From positions 2,764,689-2,828,688 of the forward strand of contig JAUPSS010000007.1 in NCBI GenBank assembly GCA_040285825.1: DNA of 64,000 nucleotides. The letters are read 5' to 3'. The notes under the pieces were generated by a model. It worked only from the letters and a program-made list of their open reading frames with translations. It was not told where the DNA came from and ran no database searches. The position numbers and the translations under genes are program-made. Below are positions 1,860 through 42,475 of this stretch, one piece after another (positions within the stretch are counted from its first letter, which is position 1; each line of letters starts with the position of its first letter). The stretch comes from Eukaryota sp. TZLM1-RC (lineage: Eukaryota; Protista; Metamonada: BaSk clade).

Positions 1860-2321
1860 TTATTTCCTAAAACCGAACCCCAGTGAAATAAATCGAGATC
1901 GACAAGACAAATCCATAGAAAAAAGTGATTTATTGTACAGTAATATATTGTAATATGTACAGTAATATTGTACAGTAATACAAGAAACAATGTTAGAGAA
2001 GAAGGGTAACTGGAAATTCTTTCTACCAGTAGCATGAGGAGGAAAATATCGGGAGAGAACACCAGGTGTTGGAGATGAGAATAAAGAAACAGAAGGTGCA
2101 ACAGAGCCAATAAGGTTGATTCGTTTTGTGCGAGACCAGAGAATTGAGTTTCCTTTAGATATGTAGCGAATTCTGTGAGATGGTACAGATAAGGCAAGAA
2201 AATCGTGAAGAGGGAGGAAGAATACACCGCCAAATCTATCCTCAAAACCAACAAAGAAACGTTCTTTAGACAAAGAAGTATCGTGGACTAATCTGTTGAT
2301 GATGCTGAGAGCGTCTTTCAT
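1860..2321 (-). CDS. MJ1316/DUF504 (RNA cyclic-phosphate end recognition, LENG9-type) domain protein
   Basis: IINRLVHD...FFVGFEDRFGG...VPSHRIRYI...ILWSRTKRINLI matches the MJ1316 signature (R..wD, vGy.DRF.G, iP.HRi.y, vWdR..r.dl). The C-terminal tail is low complexity and uncertain. Confidence 0.8.
   Translation of the reverse strand: MKDALSIINRLVHDTSLSKERFFVGFEDRFGGVFFLPLHDFLALSVPSHRIRYISKGNSILWSRTKRINLIGSVAPSVSLFSSPTPGVLSRYFPPHATGRKNFQLPFFSNIVSCITVQYYCTYYNILLYNKSLFSMDLSCRSRFISLGFGFRK
1931..1980. repeat. short degenerate tandem repeat (TATTGTACAGTAATA, about 3 copies)
   Basis: Units seen at 1931-1945, 1956-1967 and 1966-1980, inside the 3' part of the MJ1316 ORF. Confidence 0.7.
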
Positions 2322-2528
2322 GAGTTACATAGAGTTGAAATTCCAGAAACTTTTACAAAGGATACCTAGTTTATGAACCTAGGTTATGAAGTGAGGGGAA
2401 AGTGTGGGAATAGTGAAAACCTCCCAAAACCAAGTTGAGGGTTAAAAACCTCCCAGAACAGGCAACCAGAAGTCGAAAATGGGGTGACAAGTGTAAAATT
2501 TGATAGATGAGCTCTTTATTCTCACTAC

Positions 2529-4484
2529 ATGTCAGACACCCACTCTGTGTTACGTGTATTCACTCGGTCTTGTGCACTTAACTCACTGCTGACCCCTGCA
2601 GCGGTGCAACAAATTCGGACTGACCTTCCTGTGGTCACCGAGATTTGTCATGAAGCTTCTCTATTGCTTCAATCTTTTCTTCTAAATTTTCCATTGGCAT
2701 CTAGAGCTTTAGTGGAACAGGATGTATGGTATCTGTTTATGACCGTCATCACCACTGGTTCTTTTCCTAAGCCTTCCACATCTAAAGGCCAACGCCAATT
2801 ACTCCATATCTTTTACAATGGATTTCTTCCTGAATGCCCACAAGACAGGTCTCTTGTTGCTGTGTGGGAAAATTCTTTAGTGCCTTACAGAAATTCATTC
2901 AATCTTTTCCTCAATGATTGGCTGCAGTCCCAGAACTGTAATTTTATCAATAGAAAAGGGCTTTCTCCTTATCTTGCTTGTCGGGCTCGTCAATTGGCCT
3001 CCAACGTTAAGACAAGTTTACCTAAAATTTGTCAATCCTGGACAAAAAACTTTATTCGTGCTTATTGTAGAGCCCTGAATAAAACAAATGTCTTTGCAAA
3101 TAATATTCTTTCACTTTTGCCAGATGAACCACTAGCCCAACCCGAGGAAGTAGTAGTTGATTCTGTTCTTGAATACCTCATCAATTTCAATTTGAATAAT
3201 TCAAGAGAAAGATTCTTCTTATTAAATGCATGTAAGTTTATCTTGAATCTCTTTCAAAGATTTCCTACCACTGCCTCCCTACTGTCCTCACATGATAAAA
3301 TCACTTTTTCATCAAAGGAAATTAGTGAGCTTTTTCTCTTCAATCTTAAAATTTCACAATACTTACTCACTTTCTTTTCTCATATGCATTGCTGGAAGAA
3401 ATTTAGAATAATACCTTTAGCTTCTCATAAAGGTTCTAAATTTATTGAGGTACCTTCACAAATTTTCCACTCTGTGAAAAAATTTCCAATTATTGAAGGA
3501 TCATCTTCCAAAACAAAGTTTATCAAAAATACATGTCTGAAACGAATATTCAAACAATGTCCTTACCAAAAATTCAATATCAACAGAAAAAGTTTGAAAA
3601 ATAGATTTAACAAAATTTTATTGAAAACTAATGGTAATGAACTGCTTTTGACCTTTGAAGGTAAAAATAATGACTCAGAAAACACAGATGAGCTGGATGA
3701 ACCACCGAAAAAGAAAAAGAAGATCAAAAATGAAATGAAAAGTGACCCTAATGCCAACAAAACCAGAGAAACACAGTTGAAGGGTACTAAAAAATGCCCC
3801 GTCGAAGACGTAGACATCCAGTCGAAATTTTACCTGAAAGCCCCCTTATCGGCGTTGATCTTGGCCAATCAAGATTATGTGGTTACTTCTTAAATGATAA
3901 TCAATGTGGAGTTATCCCTTGTCCAACTGGCAGAAGATACATGACAAAACCTTCACCCAGTAAACACTCTCCCAACCAATATTCTGTTCAAAATTTCAAC
4001 CAATATTTGAACCATTGGAATTTGGTCAGGAGGAAAGTGTATTTGGAAAGTAATCGCCAGAAATGGAAAATAATTAAATTTGATAACCGCAGACGAAAAG
4101 AGAGACGGTTCAGAGAGAGTCTCAACAAATTTCAAAGGCTGGCTGGACATCCTGAAAAACTCTATCTTGCTGTGGGTTCTGCTAATTTCCCTTCTCATTG
4201 CCGAAAAGTCAATCGATATGGATCAGCAAGGGCTTTCAGAAAATGGTTGTGTTATCAAAAGGACGTGAAGCACTTGTCAACCAGTGAATTTAATACAAGC
4301 AAAATGTCAAGTTGTTGCATGGCCGAGAATATTCAAGCAGGCTCATGGCAGATGCGTATTTGTACTGAGTGTCAAATAGTATATGACAGAGATATTTCCG
4401 CTGCAAAAAAATATTCAAATTAAGAAGAAAGCGGAATTGTGGCCGGAAAGATACATTTGCCCAGATGCTCTGTTGAGAAGATGA
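2529..4484 (+). CDS. Fanzor (eukaryotic TnpB-like RNA-guided endonuclease), Fanzor1-type, ~651 aa after correcting two homopolymer indels
   Basis: RuvC-I IGVDLG (D 3857-3859), AVGSANF, rearranged RuvC-II TSEFNTSK (E 4286-4288), Zn finger SSCC...CTEC, RuvC-III YDRDISAA (D 4391-4393). Adding one A to A6 at 3789-3794 joins ORFs 2529..3893 and 3794..4423. Removing one A from A7 at 4405-4411 restores AAKNI and extends the frame to TGA 4482-4484. NLS-like PPKKKKKIK near 3701-3728. Confidence 0.88.
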
Positions 4485-4640
4485 ATGGGGAACCTGAGCA
4501 TACAGAAACAAAAACTTTTGAGACCGATCTACAAATGCCCTAGTAGCATTTGGTAGATCCACTTAGATACATCAAGTCGCGAGGCTTTGTTCTGTGAAAG
4601 CAGTAGGTGTATTTAAGTGAGGTAGCCCATTGATGAAGAT
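4485..4640 (+). ncRNA. putative Fanzor omegaRNA (scaffold ~4526-4620 plus downstream guide)
   Basis: Hairpin 4526-4538/4546-4559. A 14-bp stem 4560-4573/4606-4619 (2 G-U pairs) encloses AAGTC-GCGA-GGCTT (4574-4587) and CTGT-GAAA-GCAG (4592-4603) GNRA hairpins. Lies immediately 3' of the Fanzor ORF. Ends are inferred. Confidence 0.7.
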
Positions 4641-5008
4641 CATGATTGTCTTTGTCAAATGATGCTACATGTCTCTTACAACCTGTGAGTAGACATTGAG
4701 AAAGTTGAAAACAGGAGTGAATTTCACAGGGGAATGCATGATAAGTGAAATTCACAGTAGTATCAATATTGTCTGTTAATCATCAATAAAATGTTTAAAT
4801 TCTGTACAATTTGGAATAATTGTAGCCACCAGCAGTATTATGTTCATTGCTTTAAACGTTCGAGTCCAAAGCTTCCACAAAATCCCTCGTGGTAAAAAAT
4901 GTCACACATGACAAATAATCACACAATGTCCAACCCAATGGCTCTTGTCAAGATGCTTGTCATCATGTTTCACTCTTGATTTGTTCAATAACAACATTTC
5001 CTATAGAC

Positions 5009-5500
5009 ATGACGCTCAAATCTCCGTCAGTGAAACCAATCATTGACCCCCCAAAGCAGTACCGCTGTGGGGTCCTTAACTGCGGGTATCAGTCCCACAG
5101 ACTCCCTGAAATGTGGAGACATTTAGGTTACGAAAAACCCTTTGTGCAACGCCATTCTGACCTGTCTTCTGCTGACAGATACTGCATCGAGATCAGCAGC
5201 GGAGCGATCGTTCTTCATCCCTCTGTCGAAAATTCCTCTCATCCCTCCCAAAGTGCAGCTGTTGAGTACTTTATTAAAACAAGAGAAGAACGAAACTCAT
5301 TAAAGGTGTTTTACTTTGAAAAAACACTACAATATGAAAGATGCCGTGTTGCCGTTGAAAAAGAGAGAGAGGATCTCCTTCAGAAGCGAGCAGCTCTTAA
5401 CGAGAGAATATCTTTCATCGAAAATATTCTTTGTAAAGATGACACGGAGGAAAGGAGTATCTCCCCTCCATTGAAAAAGTCCAACAGAGAAGATTTGTAG
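5009..5500 (+). CDS. small protein with C2H2-like zinc finger and C-terminal coiled coil
   Basis: YRCGVLNCGYQSHRLPEMWRH fits C-x4-C-x12-H; heptad-rich tail; first ATG at 5009. Confidence 0.55.
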   Translation: MTLKSPSVKPIIDPPKQYRCGVLNCGYQSHRLPEMWRHLGYEKPFVQRHSDLSSADRYCIEISSGAIVLHPSVENSSHPSQSAAVEYFIKTREERNSLKVFYFEKTLQYERCRVAVEKEREDLLQKRAALNERISFIENILCKDDTEERSISPPLKKSNREDL

Positions 5501-5541
5501 TTTGTTTTTTATAAAAGTCTTGTAATGGTAATTGATTAAAC

Positions 5542-6370
5542 TGATGCCGTTAGGCAGATGAACACACGAAGGAGAGAGAGAAATCTAAGTTTATTAATAA
5601 AAGTGATTCATAAACGAGAATCACGTCATCAGTCAAAATACAAAGAAACCTACTAATTCAATTTGAGTTCAACAACAACACTACTTTTTCCCATTTTTCT
5701 GAGGACAAATACAGTACTGGCTAAATAGACGGAAGATATGGGGTTTGTTAAATTCTCCGGTGCATCGTTGGAATGAGAACGTTCGAGACCTACGGGAAGA
5801 ATTCCTCTGGCAAATCGATTCAGAAAAGCTGTGTCTGGTAACTTCAGTCCGGAAGCCCTATTCTTTACCTGGAGGAAACGTCGCAGGTATTCAGGACATA
5901 CGTTCTCGGACGTCACCATTACGGACATCAAGCTTCAGTTCTGACATAGCCAGACTAAAATCTTCATACATGGCGAACGATACGACAGATTGTAGATGTC
6001 TGAGAAGAACATCGTCACTGGATGAGACGTCGGATTTCTGGAGAGATAGGGACTTTCACAGAAAAGAACCGATCAAGAGTCTTGCTGGAACAAGCTCTTT
6101 CTCAGAAGTCACAGAAGAATAGATCTTCCACTCTTGTAGGAACAAGAGAACACTTTCAACTTTCATGGAAGAAAGAGACGGGAGGTTGACAGAAGGAACA
6201 GTCATCTGAAATAAGAAGGGCCAATAATTATTGATGCCGTTAGGCAGATGAACACACGAAGGAGAGAGAGAAATCTAAGTTTATTAATAAAAGTGATTCA
6301 TAAACGAGAATCACGTCATCAGTCAAAATACAAAGAAACCTACTAATTCAATTTGAGTTCAACAACAACA
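5542..6370 (-). mobile_element. non-autonomous miniature LTR retrotransposon (TRIM-like) with decayed gag fragment
   Basis: Identical 139-bp LTRs at 5542-5680 and 6232-6370 (TG...CA), 4-bp TSD AAAC, minus-strand polypurine tract AGAAAAATGGGAAAAAGTAG before the 3' LTR. Internal interrupted ORF from ATG 6205 (MTVPSVNLPSLSSMKVESVLLFLQEW...) resembles the Gag of the element at 25522-32926. Confidence 0.88.
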
Positions 6371-8248: not shown

Positions 8249-10178
8249 ATGTCCATCAAGGACATAACATCAGATCTTCTTGCACTACGTTCCTCCCTCT
8301 CAAAAGGGGAGATTCTAAAGTCATCATCCTTTTCGTTCCGTGTCGCTAATACAGCAGAAATCGTTGGTCATGAAACTCTCGATTCAGCCAAAGACTTGCT
8401 CATTCTCCACCCCGTACAGCTATGGTCCTCTGTCTCACTGACCCCATCCTCCCTCTCTGACATCTACCAACTCACAACCTCTCTCCTCGCCTCATGGATC
8501 ACCGGAGCCTCTCCTCTTGCATCAATCTGTAGGTTCTCAGGGTTTTGGGTAGAAGTTGAGACTATCCACTCTGATGTAAGTGCGGTAGATGATTTTTTGA
8601 AATACAAGCGTCTTTATTTACATAATTTCTCCAATTTAATTGAAATTGGCCAAGAACTTGGTTTTTTAGTAGATGATGACGAGCTGGTCTTAAGAATTCC
8701 AGCTGATTTTGAGCTATTCTTGAATTGTGAGGACTCTTTTCAGGTCAATGAGTCGGATAGTTTATTATATCAATTACAATTCCAATTATCCAAATTGATT
8801 TCTAATTTAAATAATATTGCTTTAATTGGCGAAATTTTAAATCAAATTAGTGAAATTTTAGACGAAATTGAACAAAATTCTCAATTATTTAATTTCTTTG
8901 ATGTTGAACTTGATATTAATAAGTCTCAAAAAGACCTTGAAATGGCCAATTCTTTAGGATTTCACAAATTTATTACTAAAACAACGTTATCAATTGAAAA
9001 TTATAACTATAAAATATTATCCTTAAAAAAATTCACTTTTAATTTTTAAAAATTTTGTACGTGAACTTCGGACTAGTCTGGACTTACTAAACCAGAAATC
9101 TATTGGTTATTTCTCTTTTTGTTTAATTAAAAGACAAATTAGCAGTTTTTCACCTTTGGCCAGAGTATTTTTGTTCAAAATATTGAAATCAATTCATATT
9201 CCTGGATCTGTGTTTGTTTCTTCTTGTATATTAATTGATTTTAATTTCAAAAACTTAATTGCTTCTAATTTAACTGAATGTTTTATGAAATTGGAAAATC
9301 AATTATTATGCAATTTATTTCTCAATAGGGGAAGAAGTCCAATAGCGATTAAAAAATCCTTTGAAGATTTTGAAGTGGTTACGGCCATGGCATTGGCTCA
9401 CGTTGATCATAGTGATATGATTCGCAAAATTTTAATTTCTCTGACAGCTCAAATTCAATCAATTTCTCTTATTTTTGATCTATCCGTATCCAAAATCTGT
9501 GATGAAATTGATTATCTTTATTACTACTGGTACTTGGAGTTTTTGTTGGGCCTAGGACAGTACGAGGAGCAACAATTGAGTAATAAACAAAGGAAACTAA
9601 TCAAATCGGTCTCCCAAAGTCTCAAGAAGGATCAAAATCCAGCACATTGTGGTCTTGATTTCTTGGTTAGTAATCATTCTATTTCTTCAAGTGATATACA
9701 ATTACTAAATTTCATTAAACTTGGATGTTCAGCTACTTTTAGACAATTGGTTCTTGCTAAATCACTAGAATTGCTTTCAATCAAAAATGATTGGACTTCT
9801 GATGAAATACGCTTCAACCTTCGTTTTGAATTATTTGATGCTCCCTATTTTCTCTTTAATCCACTGACATTTGAAAATTTTGAGAAATCGACAGACGCGA
9901 GATCAATAGGGATCATTTCACTTGTTAATTGGGTGTTGGAAGGTTATTTAGCATGGAATGAATTTTCAAAATCCGTTTCTCTTTCATTTGTATCTGATTT
10001 GCAAAAAACTATCGTGTCAAACATCTTTGTTTGCGAACGAAACTTTAAAAAACTTCAGATGAAAGATATTGCAGATTTGACTGTGGAGGAATACCGTGAC
10101 AGTTTCCATTCAGGGAGCTGTTCAATCAAATTTGATTGGAAACATGATTTGTTTCCAGTAATAAAATTGATGTTGTAA
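8249..10178 (+). CDS. NAA35: NatC N-acetyltransferase auxiliary subunit (Mak10/NAA35); one frameshift at A7 9025-9031
   Basis: MSIKDITSDL...LSKGEIL...AEIV...LDS, LASWITGAS, YYYWYLEFL and SDEIRFNLRFELF resemble Mak10 motifs. Deleting one A in the run joins ORFs 8162..9049 and 9156..10178 without a stop. Confidence 0.8.
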
Positions 10179-25666: not shown

Positions 25667-28600
25667 CTAACACTGCCTTTTCCTCTCTTTCGAGCGACGA
25701 GCCCTGGAAGCTCTGGTCACAGGAGGTGAACTAATAGAAATATGACGCTTCTTGGGAGGAGCGGGTTTAGTACGGCGACGTGCTTTGGAAGTCTTGATAA
25801 AGTCTTTATACGCGGCAGTATTTTGGACTGTAGACACATGCTCAGTGGTGATCTCTTTTCCTGGCCATTGCACTTGGCAAAAGTCACCTTCCTGACTGAG
25901 CACTTTTTCAATGATGTGTTCTTCGACATCACCTGCAGCGACCCAGGAGTGGAACTCATCGTTGGTGGGCAAGCTGGAGTGCCAGGGAGCTCAGTGTTTG
26001 ACGCTAGCTTGGACAATCGTACCTGTGCAGAGATTCTTAATATTCACAGACGAATTGGATACGATTTCAGTAATTAGGAAGGGTCCTAAATAGTCTCCAT
26101 GAAGCTTAGCGGAAGAGCCAGATGCTCTCAATACCAATTGACCAACTTCAAAAGGGTTTGGAGTTGACGATCTAGCTAGCTTGGAAGCTTTGGAAGCTTG
26201 ATGATGTGCTGCCTTTTCTTGTTTCTCTTTCAATCTTCGAAATTTAGATTGAATTTCTTGAATAAAAAGATGACTCAGACGTCGAGCTTTCAATGATTTC
26301 AAGAATTTTGCCAGGGTCAGATCTGGGAGACACATCAGAGCCAAAGATCACTTGGTATGGAGTGTGGTTGGTTATTGAGCTCTTGGAAGAGTTGATCAAT
26401 AATTGCACATAAGGCAAGTATTCAGACCACACATCGTAGGCATTGAAGTCTACGAGCAATTTCCGTAGGTTTTGCAGGATGTCTCTGTGTCGGCGCTCTA
26501 CCAGGCCGTTGGACTGAGAAAACCTAGGTATTGACTTTGACACCTCTATGCCCAAAAATTTGCTTAATTCGTCAAAGACAGCCTTGGAAAATTCGGGTCC
26601 ATTATCGCTGTGGATTTGAAATGGAATACCAAAGATGGCACAGACTTTCCAAATTAATGCATCTGCAGTAAGATTGGCATTTATCTCTTTTAAAGGCACG
26701 ATGATCGTGAACCTAGAGAAGCTGTCGATAAATACGAGGATGTATTTGTAGCCTTCTTGATCTTCTGGAAGAGGACCAATGACGTCGGCGTTGACGCGAG
26801 CAAAAGGTCTGTCAGCCCACAATGAACCGGTTGGGGGAACATGCAGTTTGGGAACTGGCTTTGTTTTCTGACAGGAGGGGCATTCTTGGACGTGCTTATT
26901 CATGTCGGTGAGCATGTTTGGCCACCAATAATCGCTGTTCCTGAGCTTGTTCAGGCTTTCAGCTTTGCTTGGATGACCTCCTTGCAGAAGTCCATGCAAC
27001 AGGTTAAGGGTGTCCTTAATGAGTGATTTGGGAATCACTATCTTGTTGTCGTGAGTCATATATAAATCAAGATGATTGTTATGAACACAGTTGTTGAAAG
27101 AGGGGTCTTTGGAAGCTATGGCAAGCTTCTGTTCGGACCTAATCCTACAGAGCCATGGCTCGAAGATAGGCAGGTCGTTGGAACATCGTTCTCTGATGAC
27201 CATGATACGTTCGAAGTTGTTTAGGTCTTCGATGTAGTATCTTTCATTTTCTGTTCCATCAATTTTATCAATGTAAAATATTGGATGAAAATTTGGAGGC
27301 ATTTGATGGGACAAATGATTGATCTCTTGATGGTCTATAGGTGGAACTATTCGAGACAACATATCAGCCCAGAAGTTATCTTCCCCTTTGGTATGTACCA
27401 AGTCAAAGCAGAATTCAGAGAATATGGGTAACCATCTTGTTACAATTCTGTTCTTCTCAGGAGCCGTGAACATGTAGGTAAGGTTTTGATGGTCTGTGAA
27501 TATGACCAGTTTCCTTCCTTTTAAGTAGTTTTCAAAACCACTTTGAGTTAACATGAGTAGGATAGCGTAGAGTTCCTTTTGGTTAGTCGGCCAGTTCTTT
27601 TTGCGAGTTGGTTAACAACCGGCTGAAGAAGCTGATAGGCCTACATTTCCTATTGATCAGGGGGTACCGGGGTCGTCGACTTGTTCGATTTGTTCCCATA
27701 TGACGCCGCCTACAGCAATGTCGGATGCATCGCAACTAATTAAAATTTGGTTTTCCTGCGGAGGTAAGCTGAGCGGCATGTGTTTCGCTATCAGTTGTTT
27801 GATCTTTCGAAGGAGTCCATCGTGCATGTCGGTCCATTGAAGGCGTTGCGCGCGGGGTTTGGGTTTAACGTTGGAGTTAGTTCCATCCTTCTTAGTCAAT
27901 CTGATGATAGGAGCGATGAGCTCAGATACCTGAGGAAGCCATTCTCTAATGAAGTTGACTGATCCTACGAGGCTGCGGACGTCTTTGATTGTCTTTGGTC
28001 TAGGTAGATTCAGCAAAGATTCAACGCGAGTGGGATCGATAGTCCGTTGCTTGTTTTGGAAAACACTGCCCAGTATCTTGATTGGGTGTCTGGAAGACAC
28101 GAAATGGCACTTTGGAAGTCCCAAGGAAACTCTTTTGCATCTGGCTTGATCAAGGACGCGACGGAGGCGTTCAATGAATTCGTCAAAGGTTGAACCTATG
28201 ATTATGATGTCATCTATGTAAATGAAGACACCGTCTCCAGAGAAGATGTCAGCCATGACGTTTTGGAAAACGGCTGGGACATTCTTTAGGCCAAAAAGCT
28301 GCACGTTTGAACATGATACTTTTGCCAGGAATGCTCAGGGCTGTTTTCTGCCAATCCTTTTCAGCAATCTTGAGTTGCCAGAAGGCTTTGGGGAGGTCAA
28401 GGGTGCCTATGTAGTTCGCTTGGGAGAGAAATACCAGCACGTCGGAGATCCTTGGAAGGTTGGGCTCAACAGGAATGGTGTTGGCGTTGACTCCGTCCTT
28501 GCCACTATAATCACCAGTAAGGCGGGGCTTGCGGTGATCTGGGTAGACCACTAGACAGACAGGGGAGCTGAACTCATGGTTCGATGGGACAGCAAATCCT

Positions 28601-29461
28601 GAGTCTACGAGTTCGTCGAAAATTTGGTTAGCGACCTCTAACCTGGCTGGATTCAGGGTCCTGGGGGGTCTTCTAACTCTGACGTCTTCGTTGTAGAAGT
28701 TGATTTCCATGGGAGGGCAATCAATACCTTCAGCATGAGGCTTGAGGGTAAATACGTCTTCGAACTCTTTCAAGGTATGAAGTAGGGACTTCTTGAAATG
28801 GTCGTTGTCGAGGTTGATGGTACAACCAGATGAGTTGATGTGTTCCAACCAACGTGTGGAAACGTTGACGACTTCTGAAGCTTGCGATATTCGATGGTCG
28901 AATTCGGCTTCAGGTAATAGTAATGTGCGACAGGCGTCGTCCATTCTAATATAAATGCCCTTGTTGTTCATCAGCCCAAGGTGACTCAACAAGTCAGCAC
29001 CAATGAGAATGGTCTCATGTCCAGGAACGATGCTGAACTTGTGTTTCACGTGTACAATCTGGGAAACACTGCCTAGTCTAATGCTAAGGGTTCCAGAAGC
29101 AGTACCAAGGGACTGTGAGGTAGATCCATCAGCAATCTTGTATGATATGGTTTCGTTGGAACGTGCCATGTTACAATTACTGATGACGTCTTCTGTGACT
29201 ACTGAGCATGTTGCACCGGAGTCAATTATGCCTTTAACTTCGACATTGTTGATCAAGAAGTTTAATTGTAGGCAGTTGGTTGTGGACTTTATGGATTGTA
29301 CCATAAATATTGTATCGGAATCATATTCAGCTTGTTCTGAGAAGAAATTAGCTTGAATGTTATGCGTCTTGGTATGTTCCAAGTTGGCCAAAGGATTGAT
29401 TAGGGAATCTTTCCATGTTGTGTTTTCTGTGTGGGAATGTGTTGTAGTTGTAGGGGTATGG
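25667..29461 (-). CDS. pol: Gypsy Pol polyprotein (several frameshifts in this sequence)
   Basis: Protease IIDSGATCS; RT LDLPKAFWQ, FGLKN.PAVFQ, YIDD; RNase H CDASDIAVGG, FTDHQNL; integrase H..H/CPSC with D-D-E (ADVIGP, SDNGPEF, NGLVER); GPF motif YLGPFLI; chromodomain-like IIEKVL...CQVQWPG. Confidence 0.92.
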
Positions 29462-32400
29462 TTTCAAAACAGTGTAAATAGTGACGGGAACGTTTATTAT
29501 ATGATGAAGAGCCCTTGCCTCTGCCGCGAGTGCCTCTTCGGCTACGGAAACCAGAACCTCTAGAACCTCTGCCTCGAGCTTTGTGTTGAGCTTGTTGCTC
29601 TCTCCACTTTTTGCTTCTTTGGCAGTCCTCACTAGGGCACCTTTCAGTCGGATGACCCATTTGTTTACAGAAATTGCATTGGACGTTGACATCAGACTGA
29701 GTGGAAGACGGTTGAGTAGAGCTTCCTTCTCGTCGTTGTTGTTTTGGGCGCCTGCCAGAGCTGGAACCTCTTGTTTTGGGGATAGCAGGGGGAGAAGGTA
29801 CCGTCTGTCTGCGACGGTTCTCAGTCTGGAACGAGATTCTATTTTGATACAAGAAGTCCACGTGATTGATCTGCTCCTTAAAAGATCTAGCATTACAAAA
29901 GTTTTCGTACTCTATTTGGAGAACACTGAAAAATTCACCTAGGGTGTGGCCATCTGAGTAGTAATGGGAGGGGTTGGACCAGATCCTGAGGAGTCTGTCC
30001 CTGATGATGGTAATACCGATGCTTTCAATGACGTGAGAAGCAATTTCCCATTCGGGGAGTCGGTCTACGGGGTTTCCGTGGATGGTGATGTTTCTCATTT
30101 GATGAGTCAGGCCACGAACGTCTTGGATAGCGGTGGAACGCGTTAAGACTCTGCCTATGTTAAGCATGAAGTCTATCCATCTGTTACCATAATCTCTCTC
30201 AGACCAATCCATGTTAACTGCATGTAGAGCGTCCAGAGCTTGATCCAGTCTACTGAATTGGGTTCTCCTTAGGATCTGTTCCCAAATGTTGCGTTCATCT
30301 CTGCTGGTTGGGACCATCGCAGAGGAAATTGAAAGGCCAGTGCCTTGATACCTTAAAGCGTTGAGAGCTTCAGGTGTAACGCATTCAGCTAAACCTCTGG
30401 GACTGATGCGCATGGCGGATCGGAAGAGATCCCATTCGTGAACTGGTTCGCTGTCGAACCGTTGGTCAGATGCCAATTCTGCTGATCTGGCTAGTTCGAG
30501 TTCTTCGCGAAGTCTGGCAACTTCGCTGGCCAAAGCAACTTGAGCAGGGTCTTCGATATTACCTCGAGCCTCATCGACTATTCTGTCGGTGCGACTCCAG
30601 AGAATGAATTTGTTAACAAACTTTAGGAGTTTATCAACATCTCTTAAGTCAGAAGCATCGAGAGTTGGACGTTTGGGACGGTCCCTACGTCTATTATCCC
30701 TGTCTCTTGATCCCACCATGGAAGATAGGAGAAGGTTGCTGTCGTAAGTACCCGAAAATGTAGAACGAGAAGAACTTACTGTGGATGGTGTTGGTTGAAC
30801 CGGGGGCTGAGAACTTGTAGAACTAGTGGAAAGGAGTGTGGGTGGAACCACTGATTGTTCCATTGGCTGTGCAGGTACTGGAGTGTGTTCCATGGGTGTT
30901 AACACAGTTGGAATAGAGTCAGGAGTTGGAGACTCATCACTGACTTCCACTACAACGTCCTCTTCAGTTTGTTCCATGGGAGGATTATGCGAGGGTTGTG
31001 TGGGGGGTTCTGTAGAAGTTTCCATAGGTTGTTCAACGGAGGATGGAACTTCGTTTTGGTGAGGTTCAGGGGAAGGTTCAGTTTCTTCAATCTGGGCAGG
31101 AACCTGATATGAAGAGATCGCTGGTTGTACCAAGCGATGTCTTTTCTATGCGACCTTCTACCATGACCCATTTCAACATCCTGGATTCTATGCATCCAGG
31201 GAAAACTGTGACAAGCTGGAGAGCTCTTTGAAGATTGCCTGATCTTCTGTGGTCAGGCCCACAATATGAAGCTATATGGTCAGGACGTCTGTCGTAAAGA
31301 AAGAGTCTTTCACCATATGTGGTTTCAGTAAACCACCACCCTGTTCTATAATCTCTGTCGATGAGGATATCGAGAGATGCGTTGTACCCAGGGCTGAACC
31401 TAGGGTATGGGCAAGGGTTGTGAACATTTATGAAGAGGTTGTCTTCATCTCCAGCGAAGCGTCTGAATACTCCTTCTCGAGTAGTTCTCATGAACCTAAC
31501 TCCGGGTCTTGGTTCATAAGTTGGTTCAGGGTCATTCCTGGAGGTTTCTGGGGTGATCCTTTCATCGGAAAGAAATGGACCAATTCTGGGAGAGATCCAT
31601 AATCCTAAGTCGTTCTCGACTTTTGGACCGTAGAAAGGAGGCCGTTTGTTGCTCATCTCCGTGGGAGGGATGGCTTCTGGATCCCCTGGAATGACTCGTG
31701 TGTCCCTATATCTAGCATAAGGGTTGTGCTGACGGGAAGCACCATGATTGACACTTGAGCTAGCGTAGGAGCTAGTTTGAGAAGGGGTAAGTTGAGCAGG
31801 TGTAGAGGATGTTCCTCTTCTAGCTTCAATCTCTCTGTCCAATCTTTTTCTGTGTTCCCAGTTTCGTTCTTCTTGGAGAAAACGCTCTATATATTCTTTA
31901 GAGACCTCACCAGGAATTTTGTCAATTTCAGAAGAAGGTGCCGTGGGAGGGACCTGATGTTGAGGTAGAGGGGAGAATTCCTTGGGAGGTTCCTCGTACT
32001 CAACCAAATCTGAAAAGATTTGTTCGTACCTTTTCCTTTGCTCTTCGGAAAGATACGAAGGAAGGTTCGAAAAGCTAGGAATGGAATCACTAGCCTGATG
32101 AGGGGAAACAGATAGATTATTAACTCCACTAACTGTTGAAGTCAGAGGAGATCCTGAAGCTGGAACAGCAGGATTTTGAATGTTCCTCCTAACAGTTGGG
32201 ACTGGAGGGAGGAGCTGTTGAGAATGAGAGGGTGGAACCTCAGAACTAGATGAAAGGGATGAAGATGGTACTTCAATGGCCTTTGTAGAGGAGGAAGAGG
32301 GTTGATCTTCTAATCCTTCCTTTGACGCGAGAGAAGGTTGAACAGTCTCTCTGTTCTGAGTAGAAGGTGAAGGTGGTACTTCAGAACTTCTTTCAGGGAG

Positions 32401-32808
32401 GGGAGAAGGTGGGACTTCAGACGCCCTTAAATGTGAAGGAGGAAGAGGAGCAACGGAATCCTCAACATCTTCATCGTCGTAGGAGACTAATGAAGGGCTT
32501 CTTCCTTCCGAAGGAATAGAATCCTTGGGAGGGTTGTCTCCTTCTACAGGAACGGAATCCCGAGGAGAGGAACTTCCTTCCATGGGAACGGAATCCTCAG
32601 GAAGGGAACTATCTTCCTTTGGGGTAGAACCCTCGGGAAGAGTTGCTTCAGGAAGCGCAGAAGCTTCAACCGAAGAAGGAGGCACGGAAGCAGAGTCTGT
32701 GGTTAGTGGTGAGGAAGAGGGACCAGTCTCTTCCTCAAGGATCCTACGCTGAGCCGGGGACGACCCAATACGTATTGATGGTCTATGGCTAGGGTTATCG
32801 TGTGACAT
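29400..32808 (-). CDS. gag: Gypsy Gag with very long Ser/Pro/Glu-rich N-terminal extension (ORFs 31087..32808 and 29400..31133)
   Basis: CCHC knuckle CNFCKQMGHPTERC followed by an RG-rich tail. The two ORFs overlap by 47 nt next to an A4 run near 31142-31145. The ATG at 32808 lies inside the 5' LTR. Confidence 0.8.
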
Positions 32809-33819
32809 AGCTTGTGTAAATGTAAAGTAATTTATTACGAAGAGGAATTGTATTCACTCTTCTTAAGCTAACAGGCGGAATACTAATAACTAAACTATTA
32901 ACTATAAATACTATTCAAGACTAACAAAGATCTTCACTCATTGTTATTGGAAAAGGGTGTTTGTGAAAACAAGTCATCAGATTCTTCACTTTTTGTAACC
33001 ATTGTACCACGAAGATTTGGATTGTGTGCCACTAGTGAAGCATTTGTAACAAAAATGAGATTATATTTGAATATCCCCATTAATCAATTATTATCAAAAG
33101 AAAAATGTATTTGTTCGAATTCACCTCAACTCACTTTGCACCATGCTCTGAATTGCTCTAAATTGATAACTTATCGTTATTCATTACACGATGCTGTTAG
33201 AGACACTGTTTTCAATATGGCACAAACTGCAAGAAAATCGTGTATCAAAGAGCCCCTGCTGAAAGAAACACTTTCTCTGAATAATTTTGGTTCTGATGAT
33301 AGAGGTGATGTATACTTTGATTGGATTGATAATTCTGAAGCTATTGTTGACTTTGTCTCATGTAATGTTGCAAATGATATGTTGGTTCACAGAAGAAAAC
33401 TTAATCCTGTGGCTGCTCTGGATTTTAAAGCAAAAAGAGAAACACAGAAAATATGATAAATATATTGAAGAGGCTAATGTCAATAGAAATACACAGCTGG
33501 TTTTTATTGCTTTCCCATTTTCGATAAATGGAAGATTATCAGTTGAAGCAGAAACTGTTTTGAATGACTTCCAAAAAATGGTGAAAGAAAAAACAATGAA
33601 AAGATTTGATATTTTTTTATGGCGTTCACGGATTCAATTTGCATAATTAATAGATCACCACGGTTTTTCAATCGAATAAGAGAAGCTTTAGCTAGACAGC
33701 AAGCAGATCAAGATTTTGTAGAGGAAATCTTGGTTCAATGATAGTCGTCCCATTAGTTATGAGTTAATTTAATTAAGTGTGCAAATACAATAAACAAATT
33801 GAGAAAAATGTGGATCAAA

Positions 33820-41139: not shown

Positions 41140-42475
41140 AAGACCAATTGTTTGATTACTTTCCCATTTTCGATAAACGGAAGACTATCAGAAGAAACAG
41201 GAATTTGTTTGAATGATTTCCAAAAAATGGTTCAAGAAAAAACAATGCCAAGTTTTGCTATTTTTTTATGGCGCTCTTGGATTCAGTTTGCCATTCTTAA
41301 TAAATTACCTCCGTTTTTCAATCGAATAAGTGAAGCTTTAGCTAGACAGCAATCAGATCAAGATTTTGTAGAGGAAATTTTGGTTCAATGATATAAAAAA
41401 AAATTAATTTATTGAATTTGCACACTTGATTAAATTAAATCATAACTAATGGGACGACTATCATTAAACCAAGATTTCCTCTACAAAATCTTGATTTGCT
41501 TGCTGTCTAGCTAAAAGCTTCTCTAATTCGATTGAAAAACCGCGGTAATCTATTAATAATGGCAAATTGAATCCGTGAACGCCATAAAAAAATATCAAAT
41601 CTTTTCATTGTTTTTTTCTTTCACCATTTTTGGAAGTCATCCAAAAAAAGTTTCTGCTTCAACTGATAATCTTCCATTTATCGAAAATGGAAAAGCAATA
41701 AAAACCAGCTGTGTATTTCTATCGATATTTGCATCTTCAATTTCTTTATCATATTTTCTATGTTTTTCTTTTGCTTTAAAATCCAGAGCAGCCACAGGAT
41801 TAAGTTTTCTTCTGTGAACCAAAGTATCGTTTGCAACATTACATGAGACAAAAGTCAACAATAGCTTCAGAATTATCAATCCAATCACAGTATACATCAC
41901 CTCTATCATCAGAACCAAAAATTATTCAGAGAAAGTGTTTCTTTCAGCAGGGGCTCTTTGATACACGATATCCTTGCAGTTTGTGCCATATTGAAAACAG
42001 TGTCTCTAACAGCATCATGTAATGAAGAACGATAAGTTATCAATTTAGAGCAATTTAGAGCATGGCGCAAAAGTGAGTTGAGGTGAATTCGAACAAATAC
42101 ATTTTTCTTTTGATAATAATTGGTTAATGGGGATGTTCAAATATAATCTCATTTTTGTTACAAATGCTTCATTAGTAGCACACAATCCAAATCTTCGTGG
42201 TACAATGGTTACAAAAAGTGAAGAATCTGACACCTTGTTTTCACAAACACCCTTTTCCAATAACAATGAGTGAAGATCTTGATTTAAAACAGCCGAGCTG
42301 CAAATATTATTATAAAGATCTTTTTCATACATTCCAGTCAATCTTTTCTGTAATGTTCGAAGAGTGTACTTCAAATTTAAAACATTTTTTTCTGGAATAT
42401 TGCCATTGAATGATTGGGGAAAACATCGACCCCATTTTTCTACATCAATTCTTGAAATTTCTTTATTTAATGCAA
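41140..42475. mobile_element. tail-to-tail family A non-LTR copies (41140-41392 +, 41408-42475 -)
   Basis: Both end in ARQQ.DQDFVEEILV. The minus copy is near-identical to 25325-25521 joined to 32931-33796. Confidence 0.85.

Follow-up and report, generated by a model that had tools for sequence, protein, structure and literature searches.

The window analysed here is a 64,000-nucleotide stretch of genomic DNA, matched exactly to contig JAUPSS010000007.1 of assembly GCA_040285825.1, from the isolate TZLM1-RC, which we take to be Skoliomonas litria, a free-living soda-lake protist belonging to the anaerobic metamonads. On its forward strand, between positions 2529 and 4484, it carries a predicted gene for a Fanzor1-type RNA-guided nuclease distributed over three reading frames. 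The N-terminal part (WED and REC lobes) lies at 2529-3788, in a frame that continues to a stop at 3893, and includes a TNG motif (3627-3635) and a basic NLS-like patch (near 3702-3725); the RuvC and zinc-finger part, with a CC...CxxC finger, lies at 3794-4405, in a frame that stops at 4423, and the C-terminus occupies 25 codons of the third frame at 4407-4484. An earlier note on this DNA had described the two open reading frames (2529-3893, 454 aa, and 3794-4423, 209 aa), their motifs and the A-runs at which the frames part (3789-3794 and 4405-4411), all of which are present in the sequence. The note had further proposed that repair of two indels would give a protein of about 651 aa ending in LLRR, and a natural uninterrupted copy of exactly this description, P0037 at locus L003 (651 aa, C-terminus LLRR), was found, spanning the three window pieces in order with 16 residue differences from the pieces, each compared apart. 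The expectation that annotation would miss the gene held only in part, for the GenBank annotation lists two hypothetical genes of 454 and 160 aa at this place, of which the latter gives a weak PF07282 match; the PF07282 match of the second window ORF was below threshold. In the searches the window pieces were used separately and unjoined, while P0037 was used for folding. The gene is of non-viral and non-toxin nature.

Assignment of the protein to Fanzor1

The RuvC domain of Fanzor1 and Fanzor2 has been defined by the order D, alternative E and D, with G or P at the canonical glutamate position (PMC10530073, PMC10711439). P0037 carries D444, G550 at the canonical position, E587 and D622, with 143 residues from D to E, and the window has the corresponding codons at 3857-3859 (D), 4175-4177 (G, canonical RuvC-II position), 4286-4288 (E) and 4391-4393 (D), in good agreement with the intact catalytic triad that had been claimed. 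The same motif order had been taken as the hallmark of Fanzor1, but this part of the argument fails, because the shifted glutamate is common to Fanzor1, Fanzor2 and some TnpBs (PMC10711439, PMC10530073, PMC13565253) and the motif alone is thus insufficient; it is the structure and profile matches that give Fanzor1.

A first model was of low confidence (pLDDT 50), and for a model built from Skoliomonas sequences only, the top structural match was SpuFz1 (E 2e-4). A model of P0037 on a deeper alignment (pLDDT 76, pTM 0.78) matched SpuFz1 with Z 23.6 (rmsd 4.2, 499 aligned residues), PpFz1 with Z 20.3 and GtFz1 with Z 19.1, against 8.9 for Fanzor2 and 9.1 for TnpB, a comparison that leans towards Fanzor1 since the deeper alignment is dominated by Fanzor1 relatives. 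The predicted models have the enlarged REC and WED parts and lie nearer to Fanzor1 than to Fanzor2 or TnpB. The nearest outside sequences were a DUF8286-bearing family (P0093 and relatives; ESM Atlas score 0.98), members of the DUF8286 Fanzor1 family known from algae, giant viruses and metagenomes, yet only 16-23% identical. The Skoliomonas profile matched this family with 99.5% probability over 419 columns, and a sequence search of PDB with the family returned only PpFz1, SpuFz1 and GtFz1, whereas the window pieces themselves gave only weak Cas12m matches among solved structures. The profile and structure comparison proposed in the earlier note thus places the natural copy with Fanzor1 (Z 19-24 and the DUF8286 match), and the predicted structure together with the transitive profile match supports assignment of the protein as a divergent Fanzor1 with an intact D-E-D triad.

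SpuFz1 (Spizellomyces punctatus, PDB 8GKH, 9CEZ) is alike in whole-chain fold (Z 21-23.6, about 500 residues), size and rearranged RuvC, but the Skoliomonas protein is 11-12% identical to it, with DLG instead of DPG and a CC pair in the zinc finger. The Fanzor1 proteins of Parasitella parasitica and Guillardia theta (PDB 9CF0, 9CER) are likewise similar in fold (Z 19-20), with 12-14% identity, and no FRI insertion was seen in the Skoliomonas protein; at RuvC-III the latter has D where GtFz1 has N. The departures from the Fanzor norm are DLG for DPG, TNG for TDG, SE for DE, and SxCC, with its CC pair, for the first CxxC. DPG at RuvC-I is near-exclusive to Fanzors (PMC10711439); DLG was found in S. 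litria and GEM-RC1, and DPG or DPN within the clade in TZLM3-RCL and another GEM-RC1 protein, and DLG is, on these sequences, a change derived within the Skoliomonas clade. The zinc finger, expected to start six residues past the alternative E, keeps four Cys in P0037 (596, 597, 612 and 615), and PF07282 is above cut-off in this protein. The TDG motif of the Fanzor1 WED domain is present as the variant TNG (367-369), which aligns to TDG of the outside family, and relatives in TZLM3-RCL have SDG and TDG.

The S. litria proteins group with their relatives in GEM-RC1 (59% identity) and TZLM3-RCL (24-35%) on a single long branch of their own, with support 90/91 in a tree built without Fanzor2 or named references. 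The clade is less than 25% identical to any outside protein found, which bears out the proposal of a divergent Fanzor in a protist host. Intact natural copies (P0037, P0058, P0062 and P0009) occur in three Skoliomonas genomes, and dN/dS was about 0.07 between species, with dS saturated, and 0.15-0.26 between the window copy and L003, a pattern in the coding sequences by which purifying selection on Fanzor is shown. The earlier verdict of a probably functional nuclease is therefore well supported for the family, by its intact copies and a dN/dS far below 1; for the window copy, which also lacks its left end, function is only probable.

Two other views of the protein were considered. Its gene could be that of a Fanzor2 or of a rearranged TnpB which a TA-duplicating transposon has taken up. 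This would agree with the shifted glutamate shared with both groups and with the location of some Fanzor2 genes in elements with inverted ends (PMC10711439), but is extremely improbable in the face of the fold and profile matches to Fanzor1, the length of 651 aa, the TNG/SDG/TDG motif in WED and the lack of an IS607 serine recombinase nearby. It is also improbable, if somewhat less so, that the protein cuts weakly or not at all and serves as an RNA-guided DNA binder or a domesticated host gene: DLG, SE and CC depart from the usual motifs, and host genes on the same strand often start 66-252 nt after the right ends of the element, so that the guides would be promoter-like DNA, but S. litria, GEM-RC1 and most TZLM3-RCL proteins retain the three acidic residues, the copies are dispersed and have target duplications, and TAM plus guide occur together only at the empty allele, with no other target in the DNA examined. 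The reading as a divergent Fanzor1 nuclease is followed below.

Further Fanzor1 genes were noticed in these genomes. A second, unrelated one at L006 (2219-5251, minus strand) is a 1010-aa ORF that has a DPG motif and DUF8286 and, in the same frame at the N-terminus, a DNA polymerase B exonuclease-like domain (E 6e-7); its RuvC-III residue is N instead of D, as in the active GtFz1 (PMC11423790), and the fusion may be real or the junction of two elements. The TZLM3-RCL proteins P0011, P0015, P0009 and P0008 represent at least four further Fanzor1 families of the Skoliomonas clade; the seven members of the P0011 cluster, each of 592 aa, point to recent activity, and RuvC-I is DPN in two TZLM3-RCL families. 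At L009 (7923-9947) an XPG-family gene model ends 53 nt before Fanzor and clusters with Fanzor (P0049), perhaps as a captured or fused host gene.

Ends, cargo and omegaRNA candidate of the element

The family is a young, many-copy and recently expanded one, with dozens of dispersed copies, about 95-98% identical, that carry transposon ends; a 90% cluster held 82 gene models, many of them fragments, and is not a copy count. The full element is 3.4-3.8 kb in length with no transposase inside. Its right end, CACAG at window position 4757, is common to eight S. litria and two GEM-RC1 copies and is followed by TA in nine of the ten and by TT in the other; in the window copy the right terminal inverted repeat lies at 4745-4757 (plus strand), and the right copy of the TA target-site duplication at 4758-4759. 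Full copies start on the left with TA followed by CTGTG, CAGTG or CTGTA. TA flanks both sides of L001, L003, L006, L007 and L008, while L004 has TT on both sides, and in L007 the ends form an 11-bp perfect inverted pair, although beyond the first four to five bases the S. litria left ends are variable. The window copy breaks off at 1934-1979 with no left terminal repeat and, in the absence of a left end, cannot be excised by transposase; three others of the eight copies (L002, L005 and L010) likewise have no left end. Beside this break (1979) lie three of the five TACAGTA motifs of the whole 64 kb, a motif that is the footprint expected of a mariner-type element ending in CAG between TAs.

Terminal inverted repeats with a TA target duplication, typical of IS630 and Mariner (PMC13565253), were thus found, in a eukaryotic transposon outside IS607, no serine recombinase being present among the genes called in 11 loci; no cognate DD(34)E/D transposase with matching ends was found in the DNA examined. 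Most likely, the element is a non-autonomous, TA-duplicating, Tc1/mariner-IS630-like DNA transposon that encodes Fanzor1 and its omegaRNA, and the window holds one copy of it. Of the two states left open by the earlier note, non-autonomous or domesticated, the former agrees with the ends, the TA duplications and the missing transposase, and the latter is made improbable by the dozens of dispersed copies with transposon ends. The element resembles known non-autonomous Tc1/mariner-IS630 elements with Fanzor1 in its TA duplication, short inverted ends and want of a cis transposase (PMC13565253, PMC10530073), but differs from them in the variable left ends of S. litria, with half of the copies having none. 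A Helitron was rejected, for a hairpin is present but with inverted-repeat ends and 2-bp duplications, as opposed to a 3' hairpin plus CTRR, a 5' TC and no duplication; element boundaries at an 8-bp repeat (2365-4622) were contradicted by the copies.

Several side observations concern these ends. At L001 (8208-8240) and L003 (10312-10340) only one TA separates the right end from a further CTGTG/CAGTG start, an arrangement which suggests that the ends of one element serve as insertion sites for related ones. Two Fanzor copies have been invaded by one and the same family of non-LTR retroelements (L003, 8226-10299, and L005, 10864-13576). The insertion in L003 interrupts the right terminal repeat, so that a functional omegaRNA end may be missing from the intact ORF at this locus. 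An isolated 100-bp segment of the Fanzor upstream region, 83% identical, lies at L001, 12695-12792, on the minus strand.

Upstream of Fanzor the full element carries a chaperonin C-terminal fragment (PF00118, E 2e-17) and, on the opposite strand, an MJ1316 domain with a single RCC1-like repeat behind it. In the window the captured MJ1316-domain gene fragment occupies 1979-2321 (minus strand), is cut before the RCC1-like repeat, and belongs to an ORF extending to 1860 in unrelated flank; MJ1316 was considered as a neighbouring single-copy host gene, but it travels with the element. The spacer between the divergent MJ1316 and Fanzor starts (2322-2528) is the presumed promoter, and all seven S. 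litria copies aligned retain its part 2377-2528; Fanzor may use the upstream region of the captured gene as its promoter. Of eight copies, two have an unbroken cargo ORF and the other six have it cut short, interrupted by a stop or deleted, and GEM-RC1 elements have unrelated DNA at the cargo position; from these sequences the cargo looks like a passive and recent capture of host fragments. Pack-type transposons such as Pack-MULE are non-autonomous cut-and-paste elements with joined fragments of unrelated host genes, the cargo being often broken. The Skoliomonas element is similar in its joined and often broken host-gene fragments, but has in addition a gene for an RNA-guided nuclease, the transcription of which apparently leads away from the captured MJ1316 start.

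Downstream of the gene, a multi-stem omegaRNA scaffold candidate was identified at 4520-4759 (plus strand), followed by a predicted guide of about 15 nt of flank (4760-4774, plus strand) that is different in every copy and is proposed by analogy to known Fanzor1 (PMC10711439). Identity between the window and the GEM-RC1 element is 82% for 4520-4757, as compared with 70% for the RuvC coding DNA and 52% for the 5' spacer. The candidate (about 240 nt) has a fold z of -5.3 and 99% of cells pair, with five pairs changed on both sides, all on one split, between two species. As in Fanzor1, the right end thus carries a conserved structured RNA with variable flank behind it, and the terminal repeat doubles as the 3' side of the final hairpin (4717-4755), a feature known from Fanzor1 RNAs (PMC10711439). 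An Rfam search of the candidate gave no match, and a search of RNA runs found none that contained this stretch. The omegaRNA of GtFz1 is also large and multi-stem (PMC11423790). In the predicted fold the first guide bases of the window copy (4757-4765) pair with scaffold positions 4660-4670 in a 9-bp stem that other copies are unable to form and that could mask the guide.

The TAM of SpuFz1 is 5'-CATA. The left flanks of S. litria copies read TATTA in three cases and TTATT in one, and from these four flanks an ATTA-like TAM, TA included, is predicted; for the pair SpuFz1 and GtFz1 the TAMs are CATA and TTAA (PMC11423790). The likeness to SpuFz1 extends to a right-end omegaRNA (candidate here) and an AT-rich TAM (predicted here), but the Skoliomonas element has a much longer conserved 3' RNA (about 240 nt) and host-gene cargo. 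Guide matches with TAM in the DNA examined were only scattered ones with two mismatches, at chance level. In five of ten loci the right end lies 66-252 nt before a same-strand host gene, as a raw count.

Origin of the frame breaks in the window copy

The isolates, including TZLM1-RC, are described in PMC11603281, and the assembly was made from Nanopore R9.4 reads with Illumina correction (10.1101/2023.05.03.539051). The frame breaks of the window copy are probably uncorrected Nanopore homopolymer errors, since the sister copies are whole at these points. At 3789-3794 the window has A6, as does L001, against A7 in five of six aligned sister copies, and at 4405-4411 it has A7 against A6 in all six. 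In the main contigs assembled from three public read runs (X1, X2 and X3; two samples, one study) one A is gained at 3789 and one lost at 4405, at nearly full depth. The read check advised earlier thus found both A-runs open, but the contigs cover repeats and leave the unique flanks 300-1175 and 4850-5530 uncovered, and so show the family majority and not the window locus; in our reading, coverage of these samples was so low that only multi-copy DNA could be assembled. A further pair of 1-nt A-run differences, private to the window copy (3714-3730, at 3714 and 3726), cancel out and yield PPKKKKK, where all other aligned copies have PPKKKRR or, in one, PPKKKRRR; of the NLS put forward earlier, the basic NLS-like patch stands and the quoted sequence does not.

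Alternatively, with the family as described, the window copy could be a true young pseudogene, its A-run indels being real slippage in a truncated relic, which we regard as possible but considerably less probable than assembly error. The missing left end, the A6 run in common with L001 and the silence of the read contigs on the window locus itself agree with such decay, as does the frequency of damaged copies (small indels in L001, L004, L006 and L010, a 426-bp deletion in L002, a retroelement insertion in L005). All four indels, however, are single bases within A-runs (3714, 3726, 3789 and 4405), against 10 private coding substitutions, of which six are silent (P 0.01-0.05 under neutrality, with only seven other copies sampled), while the true breaks of L006 and L010 fall outside long A-runs. 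The same error signature recurs in another repeat of the window, for between a retroelement copy at 41407-42475 and its twin in L003 there are 2 substitutions but 10 homopolymer indels, which is the look of unpolished long-read repeats. Bridging of the breaks in the cell, by ribosomal frameshifting or by a short intron (GT 3784 to AG 3821), is very improbable: the genome apparently has introns of 23-35 nt, judged by gene spans against product lengths, and removal of these 38 nt (3784-3821) would change the frame correctly, but the sister copies are open without bridging, there is no such site at the second break, where the shift would have to be the opposite one, and gene models with introns here may be prediction rescues. 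With long-read errors as the most likely origin of the breaks, the window copy may still produce protein and RNA.

Elsewhere in the window, an A7 run at 9025-9031 marks the point where two ORFs of a probable NAA35 gene switch frame, with no GT donor nearby and a Pfam match in the second ORF only. As a frameshift control this gene found no confirmation by homology search, its enterotoxin matches (E 0.4) being chance.

A proposed model for homing and host-gene capture

By analogy to characterised Fanzor1s, the right end would be transcribed into the scaffold plus about 15 nt of flank as the guide, and the Fanzor protein would enter the nucleus, recognise an AT-rich motif to the left of the insertion site (5'-ATTA by prediction) and then a guide match. 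Cleavage of the empty site would follow, and the element would be restored by repair on a filled copy, while a transposase elsewhere in the genome would move full-length copies. Such a homing model has been proposed (PMC13565253), there still awaiting tests in eukaryotes. A bolder version, which we consider unlikely, is that Fanzor itself drives the copying of the element and of captured host DNA, by cutting at empty or footprint-bearing sites near host promoters with incomplete repair from a filled copy. This would account for a right end that is fixed and left ends that are ragged or absent, for the footprint-like repeats at the left break of the window copy and for purifying selection on a passenger gene, and, if true, would make Skoliomonas a culturable system in which to see Fanzor homing and gene capture in a eukaryotic genome.

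That Fanzor1 occurs in non-autonomous TA elements is already known. The novelty of the Skoliomonas family lies in its host group, its deep divergence and variant motifs, its long RNA and its cargo of host genes. Our literature search, with few subscription papers within it, found no paper linking Fanzor with metamonads, to which Fanzor1 is now apparently extended. The roles of Fanzors in their own genomes are still argued from bacterial TnpB, and intact copies in three related cultured species, with defined ends, a predicted TAM and a covarying omegaRNA candidate, make homing directly testable; for such studies the intact P0037 copy at L003 (KAL0223451.1) is a better object than the window copy. 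With its low identity to outside proteins and unusual active-site motifs, the clade is also a candidate source of an editing enzyme.

Other repeats were observed in and around the window. Pieces of a Ty3-like LTR retrotransposon (protease, RNase H and integrase) lie in several frames at 26244-32853 on the minus strand, and identical 139-nt direct repeats, 690 nt apart, at 5542-5680 and 6232-6370. Upstream of the window, L011 (259-2330) is made up of units of about 975 bp in tandem; every unit contains inverted repeats and an ORF of 178 aa resembling the DNA-binding part of a transposase.
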